Source of the DNA: Takakia lepidozioides
Taxonomy: Eukaryota; Plantae; Bryophyta
Assembly: GCA_030704615.1 (NCBI GenBank)
Contig: CM060731.1
Location: 89,528,001-89,592,000, forward strand
DNA: 64,000 nt
Reading direction: 5' to 3'
Shown: positions 34,664-59,935 of the stretch, piece after piece
Position numbering within the stretch: position 1 is the stretch's first letter
Layout: every line of letters starts with the position of its first letter
Translations under genes and position numbers: made by a program
Notes under the pieces: generated by a model
The model's input: the letters and a program-made list of their open reading frames with translations, nothing else
Database searches by the model: none
What the model was told of the DNA's origin: nothing

Positions 34664-34905
34664 TGATTCCGGCGCTATGGGTTTGTTCCCCTTCCTCTAC
34701 CGGACTTAATCCTATCTGGGGAATGTAGTCGATAGATAAGACGGAATCTCACGAAGAGAACGCAACTCACTCGGACTTCAAAAACACTTTCATCCACACA
34801 CTCAAGCACACCGTTACATCCAGCGTACACTCACGTAAGACCCAAAAGCCACCACCCTCACTGCCACGGCAGTGAGGCTTAAATAGTATTAGGTCATAAT
34901 CTAAT
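34664..34905 (-). mobile_element. LTR fragment (3' half) of the family at 57300-57841, cut by CACTA B
   Basis: Near-identical reverse complement of about 57587-57841. Retains the ...GCCGGAATCA end with no PBS, and stops exactly at the CACTA terminus at 34906. Confidence 0.85.
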
Positions 34906-36356
34906 CACTACTACGTTTAAGGGGGGTTAGCGATGTCGGGACCCCGAGTGCGCCAGACACGACGACCCTCTTGCGACTGTTGCGCCGCGTAGGCGCCCGG
35001 CCCGGAAATAGCGACGTCTGCACGTCGCCGCAGCGCCGCTCCGGTGACGTTTCGTCAGCTTGCGATTCAGGTACGTCGCTGCAGTTGAGGCATGACCCCC
35101 AGCTTGCGACGTCCGGCGTCACACGTGCCCTCTGCGACGCTCCCGCAAGGCTGTGACGCCCGGGAATCACAACAATACCCCCTCACACTTAGGCGCGTGG
35201 GGAGCCAGCTCGTGCTGGGGTTTGCGACGTCCCAACGTCGCAGCAATGCCACAATGGCGACGTTGCGATTCCCCACAGTCGCAGGCCTGCTGGGGCGTCG
35301 CAAGTGCCCTCTTGCCTGGGGGTCTAGGATTGGGGATTGCTGCTACATGATAAATTTTTTTTTGCTGTGTTTTGTTCTGTGAATTCGACCCTTGCACCAC
35401 TACATCCGTACAAACTATTAGACCATATGCTTAATGACAGCATTTGCAATGCGTGTGCAAATTTTGGGAGTGAACAAAAATCATTTGGACTGAAAACCAT
35501 ATTTTCTTCCCTCATTTGCACTCCGAAATTGAGTTCTTTTCAACTTTATGCACTCTCCATAGAGAGTTCCGCAATAGTGAGTGAAGGAAACTCTTTGTTT
35601 TATTTTTATTTTTGTTTGGTCCAATTTTTTTCATGGATGTAGTGGTCTGGGGTTTGCATTCACAGAACAAAATAGAGCTAAAACAAAAATCATTGCGTAG
35701 GAAAAATCCGCAATCATAGATATTGTAAATGTAGGGGGTTGCGACCTCCATGGGTCACCTTGCGACGGTATTGCGACAGAATTGCGATGCCCCAACAGAT
35801 TTGCGACGGCGGGGAATCGCAAAATTGTCTTTTCTGTGTCTTTGCAAAGGTCATGGCAGAGGCCAAGCTGAATGGATCCATTGTTGCAAATCTTTTTAGT
35901 CCTCCTTCTGTGCTACAATATAAAAGACAAAGGGCAAGAAGTTGGGGTGGGGACACTAAGAAAGGAAAAGGGAAGGGCCATGGGATTAGAGGGTTGAGGG
36001 TAGATTGCTTTGGCAATGGCTTTGGCAACATTGTTGTCTTTCACACCAATTTTGAAGATTCTTTCTGTTGCATCGAGATCATGGTAACCAAATTGATTGA
36101 AGGGTTTCCAAGGGTAAGTCTTGGTCAGCATTTGTAGAACAAGCACCATGTCTTCCAACATTCTTGCCCTCGTACAAAAACTCAACAATCCTAGAGTCAC
36201 TTTTCGAGTCACAACTCCACTAAAATCATTCCTAGATCGCCACACCTACAAAGGATTTTTTTCATGGATTTTTCATTAATCAATCATAGAAATAAGCTAC
36301 ATGCATGTACATGTACAATCAATCGAAGGGATGGGTACAGTTATGTGCGAGAATTA

Positions 36357-39300
36357 TTATATAGCTTTGATTACGTGTCTAATCGACTTGAATATCAGCA
36401 TCTGGAGCTTCTTCGTCCTCATCAAGCTGCAAGTCTTCTTGCTCATCAGAGTCATTGTCATAAATGGCCTGGTCACCAAAAGGCACATCTGAATCATCTT
36501 CCACCTCGGTTTCAATGACCATGTCTTCATCTTCTTCTCCAACATCTGCATCTGATGGAGCCTCATCGTATAGGGTCCGGGATGCATTCATCGTATAGGT
36601 CCGGGAGCATGCTGTCCGGGGCGTCATCATTCTCTTGTACCCCCTTTATCCAACCTCGGCCAACATCGGCATCATCATGATCAGTCTCTTTCTCCTCCGC
36701 ATTTGCCTCGCCCCATGTAGATCCCCGACCATGATAGATACGTCTTCCTCTTGGCTGAGCATGCACAACCACCTTCCAATTTCTTGATCTGGAAAAGAAA
36801 ACTTGCTCCATGTCTGAAGACCATGAAAAATGCTCATCGGAGGGACGATGAGTAGACTCGAGCCTATCTGTATTGACGCGCATGAAACCACACTCGTCTT
36901 CCACTATTGTTGCGGATGGCCCCACAAGATGTGGCTGGAACCATCTTGCCTTGAAGATAAGAGGCTGGTGCCTTGTATACTAAAGTTGGAGTATGCTCTC
37001 AAGCTCTCCAAAATAGTTGAATGTGCTCATGGTAGGTCGTGTATCTCCCCTGCCCCACACGGAGTCTTGCCAATATGAGGCACACAAGCCAGAATCAAAC
37101 GTTGTTTTGCGCTTCATGTCAAGAGCACGAATGCGGAAATGACGACCATGAACCCAAACCGCCGTGTATGAGGTCGCAAATTGAGAGAGGCCCCTTGCAA
37201 TGTCTTGCACCAAATCTGAAACCACCTCACTTTTCGCAATGCTATCCTCTACTTCAGTCCGAAGCCAATGGCGGAATGAACTTAGAGGCTGCAATTCCAT
37301 GGGCAATTCTTGTGAAGGCACATTCTTACGCCGGCCCCTTGCTCGCGGAGCGCGTGTAGTCGCCCTTGCAAGATTCCGCCTCCACGCAACTGTCTCCTCA
37401 TGTCATTGCTGAACAAGGTTATTGTATCTTGCCTCCCACTCATGTATGGATGGGGTGTTCTTCAGTATGAACTCATGCGCTTGGTTAATCACCATGATGG
37501 GTAATTTTATCCTCTTTGAATTTTTGGGCAAAACGATGTCCTTGGTTCGTATATCCTCATCTTCTTTCCACATCGGAGGGGCTTCTTTATCCACCTTGTC
37601 AAATACTCCATGCAGTAGAACATAGCCTCTTGCAATGTATACCCCTCCGCCATGCTACCCTCCGGGTGTGCCATTTGTCTTACATGTGCTTTCAAAGTCT
37701 TCATGTATCGCTCAAGGTAGTACATCCACCAAGAATGAACGGGGCCGGCAATCGAAGCCTCTTCCACTAAGTGCACTACCAAGTGCACTTGGATATCAAA
37801 GAAGGAGGGAGGAAGGTGCATCTCCAACATACACATGACCACCGCCGCCTCCTTCTTCATGCGTGGAAAATCCGCTTCCTCCAGCTCTTTGGAGCAAATC
37901 CACCGGAACAATGCTCCCAATCTATAGACTGTCTCGCGAACCTCGGGAGTCAATGTCCCACGTACTGCAATGGGCAAGATGTCTTGCAATAGATTGTGGT
38001 AGTCCTGAGACTTCAAACCATGGACCCCGTCTTCGTTGAACTTCATACGGAGGGATGACCCATAACCAGTTGGTGTTCGGACAGCTCCTATGGTGGCTAT
38101 CACTTTCTTGTATTCACCGTACAACACCCTTTGGGTCCACACCATTTTCTTCGGCCCATAGATGGGACATGCGACCCTGCTCCTCAAGTTCCTTTCTAAC
38201 ACCGAGAGAATCTCCTTTCACAACCACTCCCTTCTTTGTCGGCGTGCCATGAAGAACACGAAAAAGGGACGAGCAAACATTCTTCTCAATATGCATGGGA
38301 TCTAGAAGATGACGAATCTTCAGGTCCTACACATATCCTCACCCACATATTCTTACACGTCTATTTTGTCGTGAAAGTGACAATGGAAATCATACAAAAC
38401 ATGCAATATCACATGCATGCATAGCAATATTGATGGTGTTTTTGTGGAATATGTACCGCCCAATATGGCAACTCGTAGAAGATTGAAAGTCGCTTCATGC
38501 CGGGCACCTCCACCTCACCGGACCCCTCCGGATGGGCCTCCTTCCATTGGTCTTCCCAAAAGTGCCCGGATGGTGTCACAGGTGGGGGACGTAACTCCAC
38601 TTTGCCATCAAACAAGTGTTTGTCTCTTCTTCTCCAATGATGGCTCATAGGAAGAAACTTGCGGTAGTTGGGATACACCATCTTGCGAAGATTGCTGGAG
38701 CTTTGTGCATCAAGTTCATCGCCACAATGCAGAGCGTGGTACCCTTTAGTGCTCAACCCCAAGCAAACAGTAAGTCATGTAGACATTCCGCCACATTAGG
38801 AAAGACAAAAAGTTTCCTTGTGCATCTACCCCACTACGGTGCAGAAGACTGTCGCCGCTACTTCAATCAATCCCAATCCTCATCAACCCCTGAGGTAAAT
38901 GTACGGGTTTCTCATGAGGAACATAATATACCTGGATAATCATGCATTGTCCAAAGCAAGATGTCTCTCATATGAAAAGATTGTCCGGCCATAGGGTCAA
39001 GTGAAGCATCCAATGCCTGGACCCCCCTCCATAACTCCTTCAATTCATCAACTAGAGGTCGCAAGTACGTGTCCATGTCTTTCACTTGTATTTTCCCTAT
39101 GAGACATTCACACCATTAATTGTTTCAATGCTCCACCATGCTAATTATACTTCATAATGAATGACACATACTACATGATTACGTCACTCATCAATCTTCC
39201 ATCGGAATTGCGCCAAAGAGAAGAAAATTAATGTAAAATCCAAAGTAATAATAAGCATGAAATAGGAACACTCACCCGGTACAATGGCAGCCAACATGAT

Positions 39301-40333
39301 ATGGCCTTTTTTTATTGAAAGATACGGAGGGATGTTGTAATTCACCATGGTCACCGGCCAAGTGGAATGACTACATGACTGGACAGAGAATGGGTTGACC
39401 CCATCCGAGGAGAAGCCGAGGCGGACATGTCGTGGGTCCTCCAAGAGAAAAGGCCACATCTCTTCAGTATGCCTCCATGCTTGTGAATCTTGTGGCCCGC
39501 ACACCTTTCCCGGGGGGCTCCGATGCGAGGCGTGCCATCTCATCAGTTTTGCCAATGAGGGGCTTCGGTAGTGTGCCTGTAGTCGCGGGATGATTGGAAA
39601 GTAGTGCATTTTCTGGCACCATCCCCATGTCGGCCCCATATCATAATCAGTGTCATTCATATCTCTAAGTAAAACCTTACGTCTTGTAGCGGTTGCAAAA
39701 AAGTAGAATGCAATATACAAGTGTATTGTGGCGCGGGTATACCTTGTGCGGGGCTTTCTTCCCTTGAACATCATCCCGATATCGGTCTTTGTTGCACTTT
39801 GGACACTTGGTGAGTTTTGCATCCTCTCCGTAGTACAGGGTTTTATCACATGGACATGCATGAAAAATCTTATAGCCCATCCCCACAGCATCCAAGGCTG
39901 CTCTTGCCTCTTTTCTTGATCGTGGCATTCTCGGCTTCAAATGTGGGGCAAGGATGTAGTCCGCAATAGTCCACATTATGGCGGACATACCCACATTGCT
40001 TATGCCAAACCGGATTTGCAAATTCAGCAACAACAAGATGGTTGAAAGTCTACTCACTTTGGCCCCTTCGTATAAGGGAGTTTTGGCCTCTTTTTCCATG
40101 TCATTCAAAGAGTTTGTGTCCTCATCTACCATCTGATGCATTAAGAGGTCCTCCATTGCTGCCACATCCTCATGCATAATTCCATTGTCATTGTTGTCCT
40201 CATCATCGGAGACCGCCATTTCAGATGGGATCGGGTCCCTTTGATACGCACCCCCCTCCGAAGGAACAAAATCCCGGTTCATGACAAGATCATGAACTTC
40301 ATGAATTAACGTCGTGGGGTTGTGGCCGGCATC
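36357..40333 (-). pseudogene. CACTA Tnp2/TnpD transposase with introns (putative first exon 42108-42444)
   Basis: PLYEGA..HACPCDKTLY..CPKC..RY, YFPIIPRL, DGVNPF..STWPV..NYNIPP, WTMHDYPG, PMHIEKNV, GLKSQDYHNL, FFDIQVHLVVHL, WMYYLERYMK, GSMAEGY, YFGELESIL, EQVFF, then an acidic tail. Confidence 0.92.
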
Positions 40334-40647
40334 CTAAGATGCCAAAAACAACCATGTCATTATCAGTTTCCATACATGGCGTTGTTCATTATCATACAAG
40401 ATAAAACCCAAAGTACACATTATACACACGAGGGGAATACATACATTGCTTCACCACATGAAGGAGACACTATATAATTCAAAATACCCAAATTCACATA
40501 TAACGTCCACCCAAACTCCCTTGAATATAGCATGAAAAACTGCATCCAAATACACATCAATGCCTATGTATATATATACACGGTGGAGGAAGCCACCTCA
40601 ATGTACAAAATGTCTTCCTACGTCCATCTACACATGATGAAAGTCGG

Positions 40648-41995
40648 CTAACGCCTAAAGTCATACTCTGCAAACAACTCCTCTCCAGCCCTAATAGTCC
40701 TCCTTGCACATGTCATCACAAAAGTGGGATGTTAGGGTCCAATCTACTATCCCCGTCATGGCGCTCATCCCAAAACACGTTGGCGGTGTGGCCCGGCGGT
40801 AAGGTAACTGAACTGTTGATGAGCCCAGCCACGTTGCCGTACACATCGGGTTTCCGTCACAATAAATATGGGCTTTGCGGCCCAAATTTCTCGCCCTTAC
40901 ATCATTGTCGTTCACAACAAGGATGTAAGGATGGATCAAGGACCCAAGGCCGTGTGTCTGCAATAATTGCCACTCCCGGTGGGTGTACTCGGCCCAAAAT
41001 AGGGGAACAAATCCACAGAATCCTCTCCTCCCCCCAAAACTACATCCTCCATCAAAAAAAGTCCGCGACCCATACTAGGGTCCATTGCCTCCATCACGCA
41101 ATACATGCGACCCCAAAAAAGAAAGGGCTCACCCTCGGGAATCGGAACTGGACAAGGCACAAGACATTGGTAGAAATGGGGTTGGACTCCCATCGTGAAT
41201 AGCTCCCTAGCACCACGATGATGTATGGTGCCGTCATCAGGCCGGCGAAGGCGCGGACCAACCGTGCGAAACAACTTCGGTCCACCTCTCCTAAGGGGCG
41301 CGCCCGTCCATCACTTCGGGGGCCCTTCTCCCGGAGTGGGACCTAGTGATCCATCGGTCCCAGTCATACACAGTCCCCAAGGTGGTGGGATCCATCCGGG
41401 TTCTGCCGGAGGACCCGGATACGGACTCGGTGGCGGCTGTGGTCTCGGCAATGGAGGGGAAGGGAAATGTAGGTTGGTATGAGGATCTCGCGTGGAGGTA
41501 GTACTGGCCGAGATGGCCGGGATGGCGATGGTGATGAGGAAAGTACATGTACAATAGGAGGAACGGACGATGCGGATGATGGTGATGATGGGGGTGCCGA
41601 TGTCGAGGATGTCGAACTCGGACTCGGTGGCGGCTGTGGTCTCGGCAATGGAGGGGAAGGGACACGTAGCCGGTCGGTATGAGGGACCTCGGATGGCAAT
41701 GGTGATGAGGAAAGACCATCTACAATAGGGGAACGGACGATGCGGATGATGGTGATGATGGGGGTGGCGATGTCGAGGATGACGAATGTGTGTGCGTAGG
41801 TGACAAGCACCTAGCCCGGTGCCCAAAAATAAAAAAACACGCATCGTACCCCGCTACCTCACAAACTGCATCTACGTCATGTTGCGAGAAAAAAATGTTC
41901 ACATCCGGAACGGGGTGGGGCTCGCAAGAAGGAAGAAACCCGCATCGGTATGCCTCTTCAGCAAAAAAATTGCGAGCTTGGACATCAAGACGGGG
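40648..41995 (-). pseudogene. SET-domain (histone lysine methyltransferase-like) ORF with Pro/Ser-rich N-terminal linker, frameshifted
   Basis: Joining three frameshifts in the domain gives MGRGLFLMEDV..LFPYFGPEY..PYILVVND..IYCDGNP.YGNVAGLINSS..ANV..HFVMTCARRTIRAGEELFAEYDFRR*. This follows the SET motifs GxGLF, YxG, GNxARFINHS and AxRxIxxGEELxxxY in order. Confidence 0.8.
41420..41785. repeat. Tandem duplication of about 197 bp encoding the Pro/Ser-rich linker
   Basis: GGACTCGGTGGCGGCTGTGGTCTCGGCAATGGAGGGGAAGGGA at about 41423 and 41620. Confidence 0.85.
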
Positions 41996-43413
41996 CTGCA
42001 AGATGCATGATATGAAATGCATCAATACTCAATTCACAAACGCGAGGTTTCATTAGATATAGTACTTTTAATTGAGGAGTACGTGAGAAGATATATGGAC
42101 GACTTACCTTTGCTGCATCAGCAATCTCGTACTTGGCGTAATGTTTTTGCACAACATGGGTCACCGCATCATCGGTGTGGTCCTCCCAACGGTAGTGTGC
42201 CCAACACCAACTGCACCAACACTCAATCTTGGGGAGGCGGTCCCGGCGGGGTCTCCCGGGGCTCGTGCCTCTGGACTTGGCGGCCTACGACTCGGGGTGG
42301 TGGCCGTGGGGGCAAAGCTGTGCGGACATGGCGATGCCGCCTAACTCGTAGACGAGGCGAACGTGCTGTCTCGCCCTCAGCAGGTGGTTGTGGCACAGCC
42401 GGCAACGAATCCTCAAGCGTGACACGTCGATAAACACGCGGCATGACCTAGCACGAGCGAGAGGTAGAGTACCGTATTGTGACCCACTGTAACCTCCGGA
42501 GGGTTACACTCCCAACCCTTGGAAAAACTTGAAAAAAAAAACCCTACAAACGTAAAGCCATATGTCCCACCCCACCAAAAAACAAAAACCCTAAAAACAA
42601 AACTATATTGCAGCTAATCCTAAACTAACTATATTATAACTAAACCCTAAACAAAACTATGTAACCCTAAAACCCCTAAGAGCCAAAGACCCAAAAACCC
42701 AAATGATCCTTGCAAAACCCCATAACCCAAAAAACCAAAAAAAAAATAAAAAAAATGAGAGGCCTCTTCAACTCACCTCTGCGCCAGATCTGCAACTGTC
42801 GTGCGACGTCCGTGCGACGTCCCCCTGAGGCAGCGACGCTCGTGCGATTCCCCAACGTCGCAGCGGATCCCCCTCCTGCCAAGGTGGCCGCCCTTCTCTC
42901 CCTTCTCTCTCCCCTTCGCGAAGGCGCCTGATCGCCGCCGAGGTTTTTCCGGTGGGGTCGCCACATTGGCGCGCCGCGGCTGCACCGACCGCCTCTCACT
43001 CCCCCTCTCAATCTCTCTATCTGATCTCTCTCTCCCTCACCCTCCTCCTCTCACTCTTCCTCCCTCCCCTCCCTCCATCCCTACTTTGTTTTTTTTTTGC
43101 TCTCGAGCTCTCCCGGGCGCAACTACCCCCGCGTGCCGGAGCATTTTCTGGCGGCGGTGACGCAACACTGACGCGCCACGGCGTTCAAACCCGCGCGCGC
43201 CCTCTCTTTCACTCTCCCTCTCGCCCCCTAATCCCTCTCCCTCACTCTCTCTCTCCCTCTTCTATGTCGTTTGTTTTTTTGTTGTTGTTGTTTGAGCGAG
43301 CTGGGAGCGCGCCCCCGTGACCTACTGGTGAGCGCCAGCGAACGCAAGCGCCGCGGGAGGGGTCCGCCAGCGTGAAGGAGCTTCAGCGTGAGGAGAACTT
43401 GCCCTCCCTCTCC

Positions 43414-46400
43414 TTCTCTCTCTCCCTCTCTCCCTCTCCCTCTATAACTTTTTGGATTTCATTTGGCCCTGATATTTACTATTTGCTTCTTTCATCTAAA
43501 CTGGATGAAATACATGAATAATGCTGACCTATTCTAAAAATCCAAGAGGTAGTAATTTGTACCATCATTAATGATGGCAGTTACTAAACCTAAGCCTATA
43601 CCGTAACCCTAAGATACCTTTTTATGGGATATCATCCATTAACAAAGTGCATCTCTTTCAAATATGATTTTTCATCCACCCTGGATGAAAAATCGGGAAG
43701 TTGTGCCCTAAACGGGCCGACATATTTCACAGCACAGAACTCGTGCTTCTATGATCCTTGATGATGCGCCATGTAAACCTGCTCCCTTGCGGCTACATGG
43801 TACTCGTGATGGCTGACTTTTGGGATGCGCAATGGCAGATAGACAGATTCTTCTCTGGCAGTCGACAATGCAGTGATCGCTCTGCTCAGAAATTTATGAT
43901 TCTGTTAAATTCACAGCGGCGCTCTTACTCCTCGTTGGGAAGTACTCCACCCCTACTTAGCCACAGATTACATGTTGCTCTCTTTCTGTATGAGCTGCTC
44001 TCTTCTACTTGATTGCGTTCTGCTGGAGACATCTACTGGACGCCATGGCGCAGGGCATACCACAAACACTTAAGGTTTTTTTGAGTGTACCCTTGCTTGG
44101 ATTACGATTTGTACATGCTTTTAGAATTCAACACTGACATGGATAGCAACTGTGAAAACCTGCCACTCACCTGATGCATCCTCACTAACACACATCTCTA
44201 TGTGGTGGTTTTTGGGACGGGCACAGGTGAGGGTCTTCACTTGTCTTGAATTATTGAAGCTTGCGAGTCTGATTCATGCATAAGGGATTGCTGCTACCGC
44301 CTGAAGCTGCTGATACCAACTGTTGTTTCAAATCTGCCATCTTGCTGCCTCAAATCGGCTTCAAGTCTGCTCTAATGAGGATCACCTTCTTACTCCTTAT
44401 CCCTGTTTTTGGTTCTTGATAACCACTTCTATACGTTTTGGAGTTAAGACACACAAGGGACTTCATAGAAAACAAAATCTCTGTTGAAAGCTCTGGCTGT
44501 TTTCAACAAAGGTACATGGCTGCGGTTATAGCTCTGGCAGCATGGAAACTAAGCTCTGAAATGAAACACCATGGCCTGGCTCTGATGGATCAGAAGATAG
44601 ACCTTGTGATAACAAACATTCTTCAAGGCTCTTATATCACCACTATTTCATTGCATGATAGGGGACAATGGTTTCTGAGTTCATTTCTTTAACTAGCAGA
44701 GCTTGTTATGAGGCCCTGGAATACCACTCCAGGCCCATATCTACTTGAGGGTACTCAGCCCTATGTTTTGTTTTGTTAGAAATCTGGCTTATGACTTGGC
44801 ACTGAAGCACCTTCAGACCTGACCCCATCAGTATTTTGGTTTTCAAGAACTGCTTGCTGGTAGATGTTGTGCGCTTCCTACCTTATACTATGGCAGAGTT
44901 TTGATCTTGAAGTCCTGCAATGACTATCCAGGCTTACATATACCTGAAAAAAACTGAGCCCCGCTTCTACTTTATGAATCTTGCATGTGTCTTGGCACTG
45001 ACAGATCAGTTTCACGCCTACACAGGATGTTGTTTAGGAAGATGAATGGCTCAAGAACTAGATTATGTAAGGCTTGACCCATGTCAACAACAAAAAATGA
45101 ATGCTTTATGTCAACTTATGGGGCTTTCAGGATATGAATGACCAGGAATCCCGCCCTCCCACCCTGTTTTTTCAGATACCCTGAAAAGTTATAAGATGTT
45201 CAAATGAGTTGGTAAAAGGGTGTTAGATGATGCCCTGTAAAGGGTTGCTTTGTCTTTCAATGACAATGACCTTAGTGGTCTTGTCCATGTCTTGACATGA
45301 CATGTATATCTTCTCTCTCCCTCTTTTCCATTTTTTATTGTTTGAGCGCGGGAGTGTGCCCACGCGACCTGGTGGCGGAGCGCCAACGGAACACCGGCGT
45401 GAAGGAGCTGCTGCGCAAGGCGCCCAACTGCAGGTAAGCAGCCATGCATTTCTGATCTTCATAGTGAGAGATTTCAGTGAGAGTTTGGGTTCCACGGAGT
45501 AGACTGTGGAATCCCAACGGATCTCATAGTATATAGGACAATAGAAGAAGTGTTCTTCAGTTTCAATTTCATGGAGAGAGAAGATATACATGTCATGTCA
45601 AGACATGGACAAGACCACTAAGGTCATTGTCATTGAAAGACAAAGCAACCCTTTACAGGGCATCATCTAACAACCCCTTTTACCAACTCATTTGAACATC
45701 TTATAACTTTTCAGGGTATCTGAAAAAACAGGGTGGGAGGGCGGGATTCCTGGTCATTCATATCCTGAAAGCCCCATAAGTTGACATAAAGCATTCATTT
45801 TTTGTTGTTGACACGGGTCAAGCCTTACATAATCTAGTTCTTGAGCCATTCATCTTCCTAAAACAACATCCTGTGTAGGCGTGAAACTGATCTGTCAGCG
45901 CCAAGACACATGCAAGATTCATAAAGTAGAAGCGGGGCTCAGTTTTTTCAGGCATATGTAAGCCTGGATAGTTATTCCAGGACTTCAAGATCAAAACTCT
46001 GCCACAGTATAAGGTAGGAAGCGCACAACATCTACCAGCAAGCAGTTCTTGAAAACTAAAATACTGATGGGGCCAGGTCTGAAGGTGCTTCAGTGCCAAG
46101 TCATAAGCCAGATTTCTAACAAAACAAAACATAGGGCTGAGTACCCTCAAGTAGATATGGGCCTGGAGTGGTATTCCAGGGCCTCATAACAAGCTCTGCT
46201 AGTTAAAGAAATGAACTCAGAAACCATTGTCCCCTATCATGGAACGAAATAGTGGTGATATAAGAGCCTTGAAGAATGTTTGTTATCACAAGGTCTATCT
46301 TCTAATCCATCAGAGCCAGGCCATGGTGTTTCATTTCAGAGCTTAGTTTCCATGCTGCCAGAGCTATAGCCGCAGCCATGTACCTTTGTTGAAAACAGCC

Positions 46401-47466
46401 AGAGCCTTCAACAGAGATTTTGTTTTCTATGAAGTCCCTTGTGTGTCTTAACTCCAAAACATATACAAGTGGTTATCAAGAACCAAAAACAGGGATAAGG
46501 AGAAGCCGATTTGAGGCAGCAAGATGGCAGATTTGAAACAACAGTTGGTATCAGCAGCTTCAGGCGGTAGCAGCAATCCCTTATGCATGAATCAGACTCT
46601 GCAAGCTTCAATAATTCAAGACAAGTGAAGACCCTCACCTGTGCCCGTCCCAAAAACCACCACATAGAGATGTGTGTTAGTGAGGATGCATCAGGTGAAT
46701 GGCAGGTTTTCACAGTTGCTATCCATGTCAGTGTTGAATTCTAAAGCATGTACAAATCGTAATCCAAGCAAGGGTACACTAAAAAAAAACCTCGAGTGTT
46801 TGTGGTATGCCCTGCGCCATGGCGTCCAGTAGATGTCTCCAGCAGAACGCAATCAAAGTAGAAGTGTTCACAGATAGAGAGTAGCTCATACAGAAAGAGA
46901 GCAACATGTAATCTGTGGCTAAGTAGGGGTGGAGTACTTCCCAACGAGGAGTAAGAGCGCCGCTGCGAATTTAACAGAATCATAAAATTTCTGAGCAGAG
47001 CGATCACTGCATTGTCGACTGCCAGAGAGGAATCTGTCTATCTGCCAATGCGCATCCCGAAAGCCAGCCATCACGAGTACCATGTAGCCGCAAGGGAGCA
47101 GGTTTACACGACGCATCATCAAGGATCATAGAAGCACGAGTTCTGTGCTGTGAAATATGTCGGCCCGTTTAGGGCACAACTTCCCGATTTCTCATCCAGG
47201 GTGGATGAAAAATCACATTTTAAAGAGATGCACTTTGTTAATGGATGATATCCCATAAAAAGGTATCTTAGGGTTACGGTATAGGCTTAGGTTTAGTAAC
47301 TGCCATCATTTATGATGGTACAAATTACTACCTCTTGGATTTTTAGAATATGTCACCATTATTCATGTATTTCATCCAGTTTAGATGAAAGAAGCAAATA
47401 GTAAATATCAGGGCCAAATGAAATCCAAAAAGTTATAGAGGGAGAGGGAGAGAGGGAGAGAGAGAG
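43414..47466. repeat. Long inverted repeat: arms about 43414-45320 and 45573-47466, loop about 250 bp
   Basis: Arms are reverse complements over about 1.9 kb with scattered substitutions and two 20-30 bp indels. The ORF track shows mirror peptides at 43758(+) and 47122(-). Confidence 0.95.
45430..45575 (-). pseudogene. LINE ORF2 C-terminal zinc-binding fragment in the inverted-repeat loop
   Basis: EIETEEHFFYCPIYYEIR..FHSLL..YEDQKCMAAYL, resembling the post-RT cysteine/histidine region of non-LTR elements. Confidence 0.55.
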
Positions 47467-47819
47467 AAAGAAAGAAAAAAATGGGGGGGGGGGGGGGGAC
47501 TAAGCAGCAGCAGCTGCTGCTCAGTCACTCCCCCCCCCTCCACCTGTTTTTTTTTTGTTTTTTCCGTCATCACTCCCTCTCTCCCTCTCTCTCCACATCT
47601 TGATGGGACAGAGGGAGAGATGTGGGAAAAGAGGGAGAGAGAGGGATAGAAGGAGAGATGGACTGTTGAGGGAAAAAAAAGAAAAACAAAAGGTGGGGCG
47701 GTGGGGGAGTGACTGAGCAACAGCAGCTGCTCAGTCACTCCCCCCCCCCCCCCCTAAACAGTCCCTCTCTCTCCACATCTTCATGGGACAGAGGGAGAGA
47801 TGAGGGAAAAGAGGGAGAG

Positions 47820-50800
47820 AGAGGGAAGATATACATGTCATGTCAAGACATGGACAAGACCGCTAAGGTCATTGTCATTGAAAAGACAAAACAGCTCTTA
47901 CAGGGCACCATCTACATTCTCTTTCATGTTTACAATCTCATTGAATACCCAATTACATTTCAGGGTCTCTGAAAAAACAGGGCGGAGGGTGGGATTCCAG
48001 GTCATTCATATATGAAAGTCAACCATAGTAACCATCATCATCTCAAGAATCCTTTTAAACTCATTCCAAAACCAGATTGCAGTTTGTTTTGAAGATGATG
48101 TTTTATAACCAAGATATAAGCAAGATTCTAAAAGGAAGAAGAAACAACATTGTAGAGCCCCCTTAAGCAGGTATAGGCCTAGAATGGTATTTTAAGGCCA
48201 CATAAAGTATTTCGCCAAGGTGAATAGCAGCTCAGAAACCCAGTTTGTTATCAAGCATGAAACCAAAATGATATGAGGGCCTTGGATAATGTGTGTTATC
48301 TATCAAAGTCCTATCCTTTTGATCCATCAGAGTCATACCAAGAGTTCTCATTTCGGAGCCAAGTATCAAGGCAGTCAAGTAATAACTGCTATTTTGTAAT
48401 CCACTTGTATCCTTCATAGCTAAACTCCTACACATGCAAATGTGGTTGTAAAAAACCATAAACCTGGGTAAGGAGAGAAGCAAATCCTCATTGGAGCAAT
48501 CTTGGAGCAGGTCTGAAGGCGGCATGGTGGCAGTTTGAAACAGCAGATGGCATCAGCAGTATCCACACGTGCAAAGAACAAGGAACTGCAAGCTTCAAGA
48601 ATCAAGACAAGTGAAGACCCTCACCTGTGCCCCGTCCCAAAACCACCACATAGCGCGGTGTTGTTAGTGAGGATGCAGCAGGTAAGTGGCAGGTCTTCCC
48701 AGTTGCCTATCCATGTCAGTGTTGATTCTAAAGCAAGTACAGATCACAATTCAAGCAATGGTAAACTCAAAAAACCTTGAGTGTATGTGGTATGCCTGCG
48801 CCATGGCGTCCAACAGATTGTCTCCAACAGAACGCAATCAGAGTAGAAGCGTTCACAGCTAGAGAGTGGCTCATACACGAAGAGAGAGCAACAAGTAATC
48901 TGTAGATAAATAGGGATAGAGTACTTCCCAACAAGGAGTAAAGCGCCGCTGCAAAATAAAGAACCATGAGTTCCTGATCAGAGCAATCATGGCTTTGTCG
49001 TCAGCCATAGAAGAATCTGTTTAACCACCCACCGCGCATCCCAAGAGCCGCAATCACGAGTACCATGTAGCAGCAGGGGAGCAGGTTTATACGGCGCATC
49101 ATCAAGGTTCACTGAAAGCACGAGTTCAGTGCTTGAAGTGTGTCGGCCTGCTTAGGGCAAAACTTCCCGATTTTTCATCCAGGATGGATGAAATATCACA
49201 TTTTACCAAGATAGGATTTTGTCACTGGATGACATCCCATAGAAATGTATCTTTTAGGGTTATGGTATAGGTTTAGGTTTAATAACTGCCATCATTTAAT
49301 GATGGTAGTTTTATTATTCTCTTGGATTTTATAATAGGTAACATTATTTATGTAGATCATCCAGTTTAGATGAAAAAAATAGATGTAACTCTAGCTTTCT
49401 GTATATTAAGTTTCATCATCCAATAATAAAATAAAATCATCCAGATTTGGATAAAAAAGGCAGGGATGAAAAACTAAACCTAACCTCAAAAGGTTAAGGC
49501 CAGATGAAATCCAAAGATTTATAATAGAGGAGAGGGTGAGAGAGAAGGGCTAGAGCGTGGGAGAGAAGAGGGAGCTCATGCAGGTAAAAAAAAAAAAAAA
49601 AAAAAAAAAAAGGGCGTGTTGGAGGTGAACTGAGCAGCTGCTCCCTCTCTCTCCTCTCTCCTCTCCCTCTCCCCTCTCTCCACATCATGATGGGACAGAG
49701 GAGATGAGGGGAGAGGGAGAGAGAGGACTGTTGAGGGGAAGGTTTGTGTGGGGGGGGGGGGGGGGGCCTGCTGCCTCCCCTCCTATCTTCCCACCCCCCC
49801 CACCATTTTTATTTTTTTTTTCCCCCTTAACAGTCCCTCTCTCTCCCACATCCTGATGGGACAGAGGGAGACAGAGGGATAGAGGAAGATACTATGGCTT
49901 GTCGGGACATGGACAGGACCAAACATGGCCATTGTCAATTTTTACGACAAATCAACCTCATGAAGAGTCAAACTCCACTTCAAATCAGATCTTACGATGA
50001 CCTCCATTACATTTCAAAGACAAAGAATCTACCTGGTAGATTTCAATGACAAGAAAATACGGGTGGGGAGGGTGGGATTACTTAGAAGATCCCCTCATTA
50101 TAATAATCCAGCTTTATATTCTAAGGAACAGTATGCTAAACAAGTGTTACCAACCTGTTTTTATGCCTGTTTTAGAATTATAAGCTATGGTGGCATCTAA
50201 GCAAACAATTAAATGTTTACTTATATCATGCAATAGTACTGCTCATCTGGAACCCAAAAGTTCCAGCTATTTTCCATTAATCACACAACCGGGATATTTA
50301 ATCATCTGGTTACTTGATAAGATAACCAGTTTTTTTAATAACAACAACCCAGAGCTTATCTGCTACATTTTTAGAACTTCTTGTAATCATGACATAGAGT
50401 CAAAACTCATTGCATTGTTTAGTAAGCTTGATTTCCCATAACTGCTTTCTACTGCAGTGTTCTGTATCAGAATATGCCATAGCTAGTAAAAAACAAACAG
50501 CTATCTTTTTTGTAACATAAAATCCAGAGCCATGCTGTAGGTATGATTGTTAATCAGTCTTTGATTACCAAGCAACAACAGAGGCTTCTCTTTAAAACAA
50601 CCAGACCTGGTTTAGGTCTGGGGTCATTATGTTACAACCTTGACAAGGTGTTTGCAAGGCAAAAAAAAGACTTTTAATGAAGTTCAGAAAGGCCATAGTT
50701 CCCACACTTGTTCAAACCCTGGTGTTACACAGGTTTTGAATCGATAACATCTGAAAAAATTATATTGTGTAGCCTGATATTTTTATCAAGCCAGAGCAGC

Positions 50801-57299: not shown

Positions 57300-57841
57300 T
57301 GTGGAGCTGGGATTCCTTCTCACCTTCCTTTTCGACATGGATGAATGGAGGAGGGATGCACTCCGGATGATTTAGAGATGGACGGAGCCAGGATGAAGTC
57401 TGGATGAACTTACACCTTGCGCATGAGGATGAGCTGGCAACAACTGATGACTTTATTAGGTGTTGTCTTATTCTAACAGCTAGTTTAGGATTAGATTAGG
57501 ATGGATTTGGGTGATCTGGCTTCTTTCTATGGCTATGCTGGAAGGGCATCTGGTGGGCCTATATGTAAGTGCCACGTGGCACTAGGATTAGATTATGACC
57601 TAATACTATTTAAGCCTCACTGCCGTGGCAGTGAGGGTGGTGGCTTTTGGGTCTTACGTGAGTGTACGCTGAGTGTAACGATGTGCTTGAGTGTGTGGAT
57701 GAAAGTGCTTTTGAAGTCCAAGTGAGTTGCGTCCTCTTTGTGAGATTCCGTCTTCTCTGCCAGGCCTATCTATCGACTACATTCCCCAGATAGAATTAAG
57801 TCCGGTAGAGGAAGGGGAACAAGCCCATAGCGCCGGAATCA
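57300..57841 (+). mobile_element. 5' LTR (about 542 bp, TG...CA) of a second LTR retrotransposon family
   Basis: Starts TGTGGAGC after AT-rich flank (the start is less certain) and ends GGAATCA directly before a PBS. A paralogous LTR piece lies at 34664-34905. Confidence 0.8.
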
Positions 57842-59572: not shown

Positions 59573-59935
59573 CACTACTACGTTTAGCGGGGTTTAGCGA
59601 CGCCGGGACCCCGAGCACGCCGGACGCGACGACCCTCCTTCGACTGCAGCGCCGGGCAAAATTGTCCGAATCCAATGGCGGAATGAACTTGGAGGCTGCA
59701 ATTCCATGGGCAAATCTTGTGAAGGCACATTCCTACGCCGACCCCTTGCTCGCGGAGCGCATGTAGTCGCCCTTGCATGGTTCCGCCTCCACGCAACCGT
59801 CTCCTCCTGTCGTTGCTAAACAAGGTTATTGTATCTTGCCTCCACTCATGTATGGATGGGGTGTTCTTCAGTATGAAACTCATGCGCTTGGTTAATCACC
59901 ATGATGGGTAATTTTACCCTCTTTGAATTTTTGGG
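59573..59935 (-). mobile_element. Internally deleted derivative of CACTA family B
   Basis: Terminus CACTACTACGTTTA matches 34906 and is fused after about 90 bp to sequence matching the transposase at 37260-37527. Confidence 0.85.

Follow-up and report, generated by a model that had tools for sequence, protein, structure and literature searches.

The 64,000-nucleotide stretch of Takakia lepidozioides DNA analysed here (contig CM060731.1; hereafter the window, in whose numbering all positions are given) contains a CACTA transposon of the Tnp2 type, and the first intron of its minus-strand transposase gene holds an open reading frame (ORF) resembling a SET domain. A sequence-only reading of the stretch had described this ORF as a cryptic SET-domain gene, carried by the transposon and read across three frameshifts. 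The minus-strand peptides that it quoted are present at 40651–41310, spread over three frames, and its letters, order and coordinates proved correct. Contigs of four public runs from three studies were compared with window positions 39600–43000; three of these are DNA runs, and the RNA status of the fourth, X8, is a guess only. The pieces of the ORF, the sites at which the contigs restore its frame, and the ORF with the contig bases are as follows.

40990–41310, minus strand: piece A, which holds GRGLF and PYFGP.
40850–40987, minus strand: piece B, which ends in CDGN.
40728–40847, minus strand: piece C, DVYGNVAGLINSS.
40651–40725, minus strand: piece D, ARRTIRAGEELFAEY, followed by a stop codon at 40648–40650.
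40987: frameshift site 1, with an extra C behind this base in contigs of the three DNA runs.
40847: frameshift site 2, with an extra G behind this base in contigs of all four runs.
40727: frameshift site 3, with an extra T behind this base in contigs of all four runs.
40648–41310, minus strand: SET-domain-like ORF, 221 codons from stop to stop with the three read-supported bases.

A 1.6-kilobase (kb) contig approximately 99.5% identical to 39864–41451 was present in two of the DNA runs, and the third gave shorter contigs with the same sites. Addition of the three read-supported bases led to a single open frame of 221 codons with the motifs GRGLF, PYFGP, YGNVAGLINSS and AGEELFAEY, and the alignment of this ORF to the related proteins P0001 and P0007 (see below) runs unbroken across 40987. 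Because independent contigs carry a frame-restoring base at each shift site, the SET gene is not shown to be broken; it is probably intact, and an intact form of the ORF exists in the species, whether the lesions in the window are real or assembly errors. The description of the gene as cryptic across three frameshifts was therefore abandoned: contigs of three studies show the frame open, and the three shifts do not belong to the gene but come from assembly errors or from lesions private to this copy.

Relatives of the ORF were found among metagenomic proteins. Piece A, compared exhaustively by phmmer with 1.8 billion cluster representatives, returned one relative, P0001 (expectation value (E) 1.5e-9), and no close host-like protein. 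The proteins P0002–P0015 were obtained by searching with residues 1–80 of P0001, followed by listing of the cluster members, and two of them, P0007 and P0009, are intact at 231 amino acids. The four window pieces are collinear on P0007, matching residues 60–121, 143–166, 168–205 and 208–229 with E = 4e-18, 7e-3, 4e-11 and 4e-8, a match that by sequence comparison is far beyond chance. In a local comparison, the read-supported joined ORF showed 46% identity to P0007 over 179 residues (E = 2.5e-46), and the SET cores of the window and its relatives are 52% identical.

Searches against the Pfam SET family (PF00856; cut-off 22.4 bits) gave 24.4 bits for P0007 and 24.5 bits for P0009, covering profile positions 1–104 of 105, and 22.8 bits for P0002. 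Passage of this threshold by the intact relatives bears out the earlier assignment of a SET-domain-like gene. The window itself was searched as four single-frame pieces, of which piece D alone matched, weakly (E = 0.088, 13.7 bits, profile positions 87–104 of 105), so that the membership of the window ORF in the SET family rests on its homology to the intact relatives. Among the nearest ESM-Atlas clusters, 23 of 30 are SET families. Alignment by hhalign paired INST...AGEELFAHY of the relatives with FINHSC...GEELxxDY of viral SET proteins (P = 4e-4), and the read-supported window ORF scored 9.0 bits against a small home-made viral SET profile, the best of 1000 shuffles reaching 1.2. The viral SET proteins for this outgroup profile were chosen by motif; they come from viral contigs (IMG/VR; L026, L027, L032, L035 and others), on which small SET ORFs of 128–165 amino acids bearing a FINHSCxPN motif are frequent.

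An AlphaFold2 (AF2) model of P0007 residues 66–231 was built from the family alignment and 12 true viral SET proteins. Its mean predicted local distance difference test (pLDDT) score was 52.5, with confident prediction only at residues 5–53 and 145–160, corresponding to the N-terminal sheet and the C-terminal hairpin. The best Foldseek matches of the model were all SET or PR domains (best E = 1.7e-4). Comparison with VIA gave a Z-score of 9.8 for SET8 (root-mean-square deviation of 3.2 Å, 110 residues aligned) and 8.6 for vSET (98 of 105 residues aligned), and PRDM5, PRDM3 and PRDM2 were among the structural matches. Because the alignment contained SET proteins, the fold match indicates compatibility and not independent proof, and because the matches tie across SET subfamilies, they do not allow substrate specificity to be inferred. 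A single-sequence AF2 model of P0002 was poor (pLDDT 39.5). Sequence searches of the PDB with pieces C and D, P0002 and the family profile A1 gave no match at E up to 10, a homologous-protein search with two window pieces gave no relative, an ESM Atlas search with the N-terminal half of piece A gave no usable match, and a metagenome scan with P0002 gave patterns but no relative. The contig L015, recovered by a scan with a degenerate DNA pattern for YGNVAG(L)IN, was rejected as a chance match.

The state of the SET motifs is shared by the window and its relatives. The GxG motif is present as GRGLF in the window and all relatives, aligning with GIGLF and GNGLF of viral SET proteins, and the C-terminal motif with its Tyr is present as AGEELFAEY in the window and AGEELFAHY in the relatives, both aligning with GEELTVDY. 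In the NHS(C) motif the Asn is kept and the His is replaced by Ser (LINSS in the window, FINST in the relatives). The protein ends 4–5 residues past the motif Tyr in both, with no post-SET region. The earlier observations that NHS reads NSS and that a post-SET region is missing are thus accurate, and both traits are conserved; as NSS occurs in the window and NST in the relatives, the NHS change is an old trait of the family, not decay. Two further family traits are a long N-terminal extension and an insert of about 15 residues that separates the INS(S/T) motif from the C-terminal hairpin.

Upstream of the SET ORF, comparison with the contigs revealed a coding first exon with two apparent splice joints, one leading to the transposase and the other to the SET ORF.

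42108–42444, minus strand: coding part of the shared exon 1, with ATG at 42444 and the donor after 42108, a 114-codon open frame with read-supported letters.
42161–42163, minus strand: TGA in exon 1 of the window, CGA in all four runs (42163 A>G on the plus strand, a CpG site).
40334–42107, minus strand: long intron of the transposase isoform, 1774 nucleotides, GT..AG, containing the whole SET exon (X8 record 26).
41996–42107, minus strand: short intron of the SET isoform, 112 nucleotides, GT..AG, donor AAG/GTAAGT, acceptor cttgcag/CCCCGT (X8 record 29).
41311–41995, minus strand: upstream part of the alternative exon, with PRLDVQARNF at 41995, then a stretch rich in Pro, Ser and His in which a unit of about 197 nucleotides is repeated in diverged form.
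36563–40333, minus strand: body of the Tnp2 transposase, exon 2 onward, in frame with the ORF starting MNRDF at 40282.

Exon 1 is opened by five read-supported insertions and the A>G change, and ends on a complete codon. It carries a zinc-finger-like CxCxxC...H..H pattern common to the window and its relatives. The exon 1 sequences of the relatives scored 21.0 and 19.8 bits against Pfam Transpos_assoc (PF13963; E = 3.8e-4 and 9e-4), below the cut-off of 27.7 bits, so that the domain resembles the transposase-associated domain, a resemblance and not membership. One X8 contig joins 42107/42108 to 40332/40333, placing the Tnp2 exon at 40333 in frame. A second X8 contig ends at 41997, with an 11-letter loose end that matches the end of exon 1, from which we infer the junction 42108/41995; the exon at 41995 is in frame with PRLDVQARNF. 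Both joints are known from X8, and neither was found in any of the three DNA runs. Since both joints are in frame and the splice sites are conserved in the relatives (see below), the SET protein and the transposase appear to be alternative products built on the one zinc-finger-like first exon.

The Pro/Ser/His-rich stretch of the alternative exon shows 30% identity to the N-terminal extension of the relatives. Its repeat units, at 41422–41616 and 41619–41786, are 77% alike and lie upstream of the SET part, and all three minus-strand frames are open there. Tandem Repeats Finder did not report the repeat of about 197 nucleotides at 41422–41786, and an X8 contig appears to be one such unit shorter in this interval. 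In an X8 contig, 42450–42801 (352 nucleotides of low-complexity, T/G-rich sequence with a 27-nucleotide tandem repeat) is replaced by 45 other letters; conserved sequence begins again within a few bases upstream of the ATG of exon 1.

Over 39600–43000, the window is one base short at 11 of the 12 listed 1-nucleotide differences from the contigs of the three studies. At most substitutions the window has T or A and the reads C or G, and 7 of the 13 transition differences are at CpG sites. Long-read consensus errors in methylated DNA would produce such a pattern, and so would real deamination with indel lesions in this one copy; apparent frameshifts and stops in the repeats of this assembly may be artefacts. 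In an assembly with single-base losses and TpG for read CpG, apparent pseudogenes in methylated repeats should be checked against reads first.

The transposase identity of the surrounding gene is given by Tnp2 domains at 37507–39891 on the minus strand, Transposase_21 (E = 1.2e-24 and 3.5e-9) and DUF4218 (E = 7.8e-33), and the element's ends were sought on both sides of it.

34906–34924, plus strand: CACTA terminus CACTACTACGTTTAAGGGG (CACTACTACG...), marking the element's 3’ end in the reading direction of the transposase gene.
34970–35815, both strands: 3’ subterminal repeat region, with the motifs CGTCGCAA, CTTGCGAC and ACGTCGCA (k-mer positions).
42802–42860: subterminal motif in a few copies, on the 5’ side ahead of exon 1.

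The SET ORF is internal to the element, between exon 1 and exon 2 of Tnp2, and outside the subterminal repeats. Its earlier placement inside those repeats was incorrect: motifs of the ACGTCGCA type cluster at 34970–35815 and 42802–42860, and the ORF lies in the first intron of the transposase. The CACTA terminus starts exactly where a 243-nucleotide flanking repeat (34664–34906) ceases to match its inverted copy at 57586–57841. The left copy of this inverted repeat, which is about 250 nucleotides long with copies 91% alike, is cut exactly at the terminus, so the insertion of the CACTA took place in that copy. A perfect 24-nucleotide inverted pair at 34859 and 57633 was considered as the element ends and rejected, being part of the 243-nucleotide flanking repeat. 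A search within the window for a 5’ terminal inverted repeat, or an inverted partner of the 34906 terminus, found none, and no TnpA-like ORF was found downstream of Tnp2.

The expected position of the CACTA 5’ end is occupied by a foldback-like block at 43415–49548. Its arms at 43415–43895 and 46985–47465 are 98% complementary, nested arm pairs within 43415–47465 are 97–100% complementary, and outer arms at 48316–49548 are 72–93% complementary. This copy of the element may be truncated or interrupted at the block starting at 43415. A second copy of the CACTA terminus, CACTACTACGTTTAGCGGG, is present at 59573 in the same orientation, and 91 nucleotides further in, 59664–59935 matches 37257–37528 in the Tnp2 region at 94.5%. 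The interval 59573–59935 looks like an internally deleted relative of the CACTA element.

To this locus, many metagenome and Logan contigs of relatives add a second lineage with the same organization: exon 1, linker, SET and Tnp2 follow each other on one strand, as in the window. The SET part lies directly upstream of Tnp2 on six contigs (L003, L014, L005, L006, L007 and L013), and exon 1 lies upstream of SET on four (L001, L004, L005 and L012). The relatives keep the donor GAG/GTCAGT and the acceptors TTGCAG/CCTCGA... and TTACAG/GAACCC..., in the same phase. Their frame is open from the 41995-type acceptor through the linker into the SET start in P0003 and P0012 and on L004, L005 and L012. 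Between the lineages, the Transposase_21 core is 64% identical and DUF4218 48%; the SET core, at 52%, falls between them, and the linker reaches about 30%. Judged by these values, conservation of the SET domain is similar to that of the transposase. In a subfamily of the relatives, the middle of the SET part is interrupted near P0007 residue 131 by an insertion of about 2 kb, at the same place on L005 (1742–3796), L012 (4768–6822), L006 and L008.

With the Tnp2 domains on the same strand as the ORF, and several contigs of relatives about 46–52% identical carrying this gene at the corresponding position, the proposal that a CACTA element carries the SET gene was supported. The recurrence of the SET and Tnp2 order in a related lineage also shows that the gene is not a one-off capture. 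The SET gene is an integral, conserved part of this CACTA family, and is probably transcribed.

Based on these results, we propose, with a probability of roughly 0.6, that the stretch is the SET-domain exon of a two-product CACTA transposon of the Tnp2 type, and that the SET product acts on the silencing or transposition of the element. In this model, one promoter would give rise to the transposase or the SET protein by choice of splice acceptor, as En/Spm makes TnpD and TnpA. The SET isoform would consist of the zinc-finger-like domain of exon 1, the Pro/Ser/His-rich linker and the SET domain, and because no TnpA-like ORF follows Tnp2, it would be the second product of the element. By analogy, the shared N-terminal domain could bring the SET protein to the DNA or the partners of the transposase, where it would probably methylate a lysine in chromatin or in a protein of the element. 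Such methylation may influence the element's own silencing or transposition, by opposing silencing, by promoting it or by modifying the transposase. A more specific form of the model is that a land-plant lineage of Tnp2-type CACTA elements encodes an active lysine methyltransferase, targeted through a transposase domain by alternative splicing and marking a histone or the transposase at the element ends. We offer this form tentatively, as a possibility that falls short of being expected; if true, the element would carry its own chromatin writer, with which it adjusts its silencing or integration.

Several observations weigh against the proposal of a two-product element. The window's own letters hold three frameshifts, the TGA in exon 1 and a stop at 41311–41313, and the frame from about 41750 to 41310 is not followable in them, owing to five unlisted 1-nucleotide differences (41054–41749) and this same stop. 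The contigs that repair the frame may stem from a sister copy about 99.5% identical to the window, and the share of transitions at CpG sites is a pattern expected of real deamination. X8 is of guessed status and has no coverage of 40968–41423, and its spliced contigs come from other copies, since they are 7–11% different from the window. No relative contig, taken singly, has an unbroken frame between the acceptor and the SET stop: in L003 and L014 the frame changes within a poly-Pro tract, and L005 and L012 have the 2-kb insertion in SET. Among close copies, the ratio of nonsynonymous to synonymous substitution rates (dN/dS) is 0.4–1.8 with very few changes, and no constraint is seen at that scale. 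The Pfam SET scores of the relatives barely exceed the cut-off, the middle of the AF2 model is of low confidence and its fold match is partly circular because the alignment was seeded with SET proteins, the NHS His is replaced and the post-SET region absent, and with no 5’ terminal repeat found this copy is possibly truncated.

The His-to-Ser change makes a catalytically inactive domain a serious rival to this proposal, even if an unlikely one on present evidence. Here the SET-like fold would be conserved as a binding module or decoy, for histone tails or for partners of host methyltransferases, brought into place by the shared domain. The occurrence of Ser at the NHS His position in both NSS and NST marks an old, tolerated change, the protein ends shortly past the motif Tyr with no post-SET region, and PR/SET-like domains without the NHS His (PRDM5, PRDM3 and PRDM2) are among the structural matches, all of which an inactive domain would accommodate. 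Retention of the GxG motif, the Asn and EELFxxY with its Tyr in both lineages speaks against this reading, however, and minimal SET enzymes without a post-SET region exist, as exemplified by vSET. A distinctly improbable reading is that the ORF is a separate gene nested in the transposase intron, with its own start at a Met near 41190 (about 178 amino acids), and is not fused to exon 1. A Met does precede GRGLF by about 45 residues in the window (MGVQPHF), with a counterpart at the equivalent position of the relatives (MLKFFDPSYW), and in the window letters the stop at 41311–41313 divides the SET ORF from the upstream frame; but an X8 contig links the end of exon 1 to 41995 in frame at a conserved acceptor, and in the relatives the frame runs open from the acceptor through the linker into the SET start.

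Plant CACTA elements are known to capture gene fragments, and the frameshifts in the window letters, together with dN/dS near 1 among close copies, would suit a decaying fragment of a host SET gene, captured once and functionless, as in Pack-CACTA elements. We consider this highly improbable, since the gene, its position and its splice sites recur in a lineage with no more than 64% identity in the transposase core, the ORFs of P0007 and P0009 and the read-supported one of the window are intact, and the search of 1.8 billion cluster representatives brought up no close host-like protein.

The organization proposed here can be compared with that of known systems. The maize CACTA element En/Spm produces TnpA and TnpD from one transcript by alternative splicing. 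Like the two-product element proposed here, it belongs to the CACTA superfamily, uses one promoter and first exon, and encodes one product within the first intron of the other, with the second product thought to act at the element ends and on the epigenetic state. The two differ in that exon 1 of En/Spm is non-coding, while exon 1 here encodes a shared zinc-finger-like domain, and in that TnpA is a DNA-binding protein with no enzyme domain, while the second product here ends in a SET domain. Primate SETMAR is a host gene with a domesticated mariner transposase, and is similar in that a SET domain and transposon-derived sequence are joined in one protein by splicing; in the present case, however, the SET exon resides in a multicopy transposon and only the N-terminal domain is shared with the transposase. 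Direct action on chromatin is known for few transposon proteins in plants, and the textbook cases, TnpA and VANC, are not enzymes.

Among SET proteins, the family resembles vSET of Paramecium bursaria chlorella virus and the PR/SET domains, which are likewise small and free of pre-SET and post-SET zinc clusters (structural Z-scores of 8.6–9.2); the canonical NHS His is also absent from PR domains. Identity to these proteins is about 15–23%, and the insert of about 15 residues and the long N-terminal extension set the family apart.

SET genes are already known in other transposons, so the sequence-only suggestion that the gene is undescribed holds only in part. In the red alga Bostrychia, Plavaka elements of the EnSpm/CACTA superfamily carry PAG2, with a DNA methylase (PF01555) and a SET domain, and SET genes have also been captured by Helitrons and HarbingerS (bioRxiv 10.1101/2025.02.11.637652). 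The likeness to Plavaka lies in an EnSpm-superfamily element carrying a SET accessory gene; compared by description and not by sequence, the two differ in lineage and host (Plavaka in a red alga, Tnp2-type in a land plant), and PAG2 is a separate gene that also has a DNA methylase domain, with no exon sharing with the transposase reported. Genes for SET histone methyltransferases are also found in HarbingerS and in the MuDR families of Phytophthora (Repbase Reports 2014, cited by PMC12730594). By the account given there, these too are DNA transposons with their own SET gene, but they belong to other superfamilies and Phytophthora is an oomycete, a comparison likewise by description and not by sequence. 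VANC of the Arabidopsis VANDAL (Mutator) elements is a sequence-specific anti-silencing factor (PMC5735166, as cited in PMC12730594). It is similar in being an accessory protein of a plant DNA transposon thought to act on the chromatin of its own element; it differs in having no known enzyme fold, whereas the protein here has a predicted enzyme-type SET fold.

A literature search, with Repbase outside its scope, turned up no land-plant CACTA element of the Tnp2 type described as carrying a SET gene, and hence none in which a SET product shares an exon with the transposase. What is new is therefore the land-plant host group, the Tnp2 lineage and the exon held in common with the transposase, transposon-borne SET genes themselves being already known. 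If the SET protein shares the N-terminal domain of the transposase, it would be a self-targeting enzyme, and the element would provide a testable model of a transposon editing its own epigenetic state. This exon-sharing case in a land plant joins the red-algal Plavaka, HarbingerS and the oomycete MuDR elements, and points to repeated recruitment of the SET fold by transposons.

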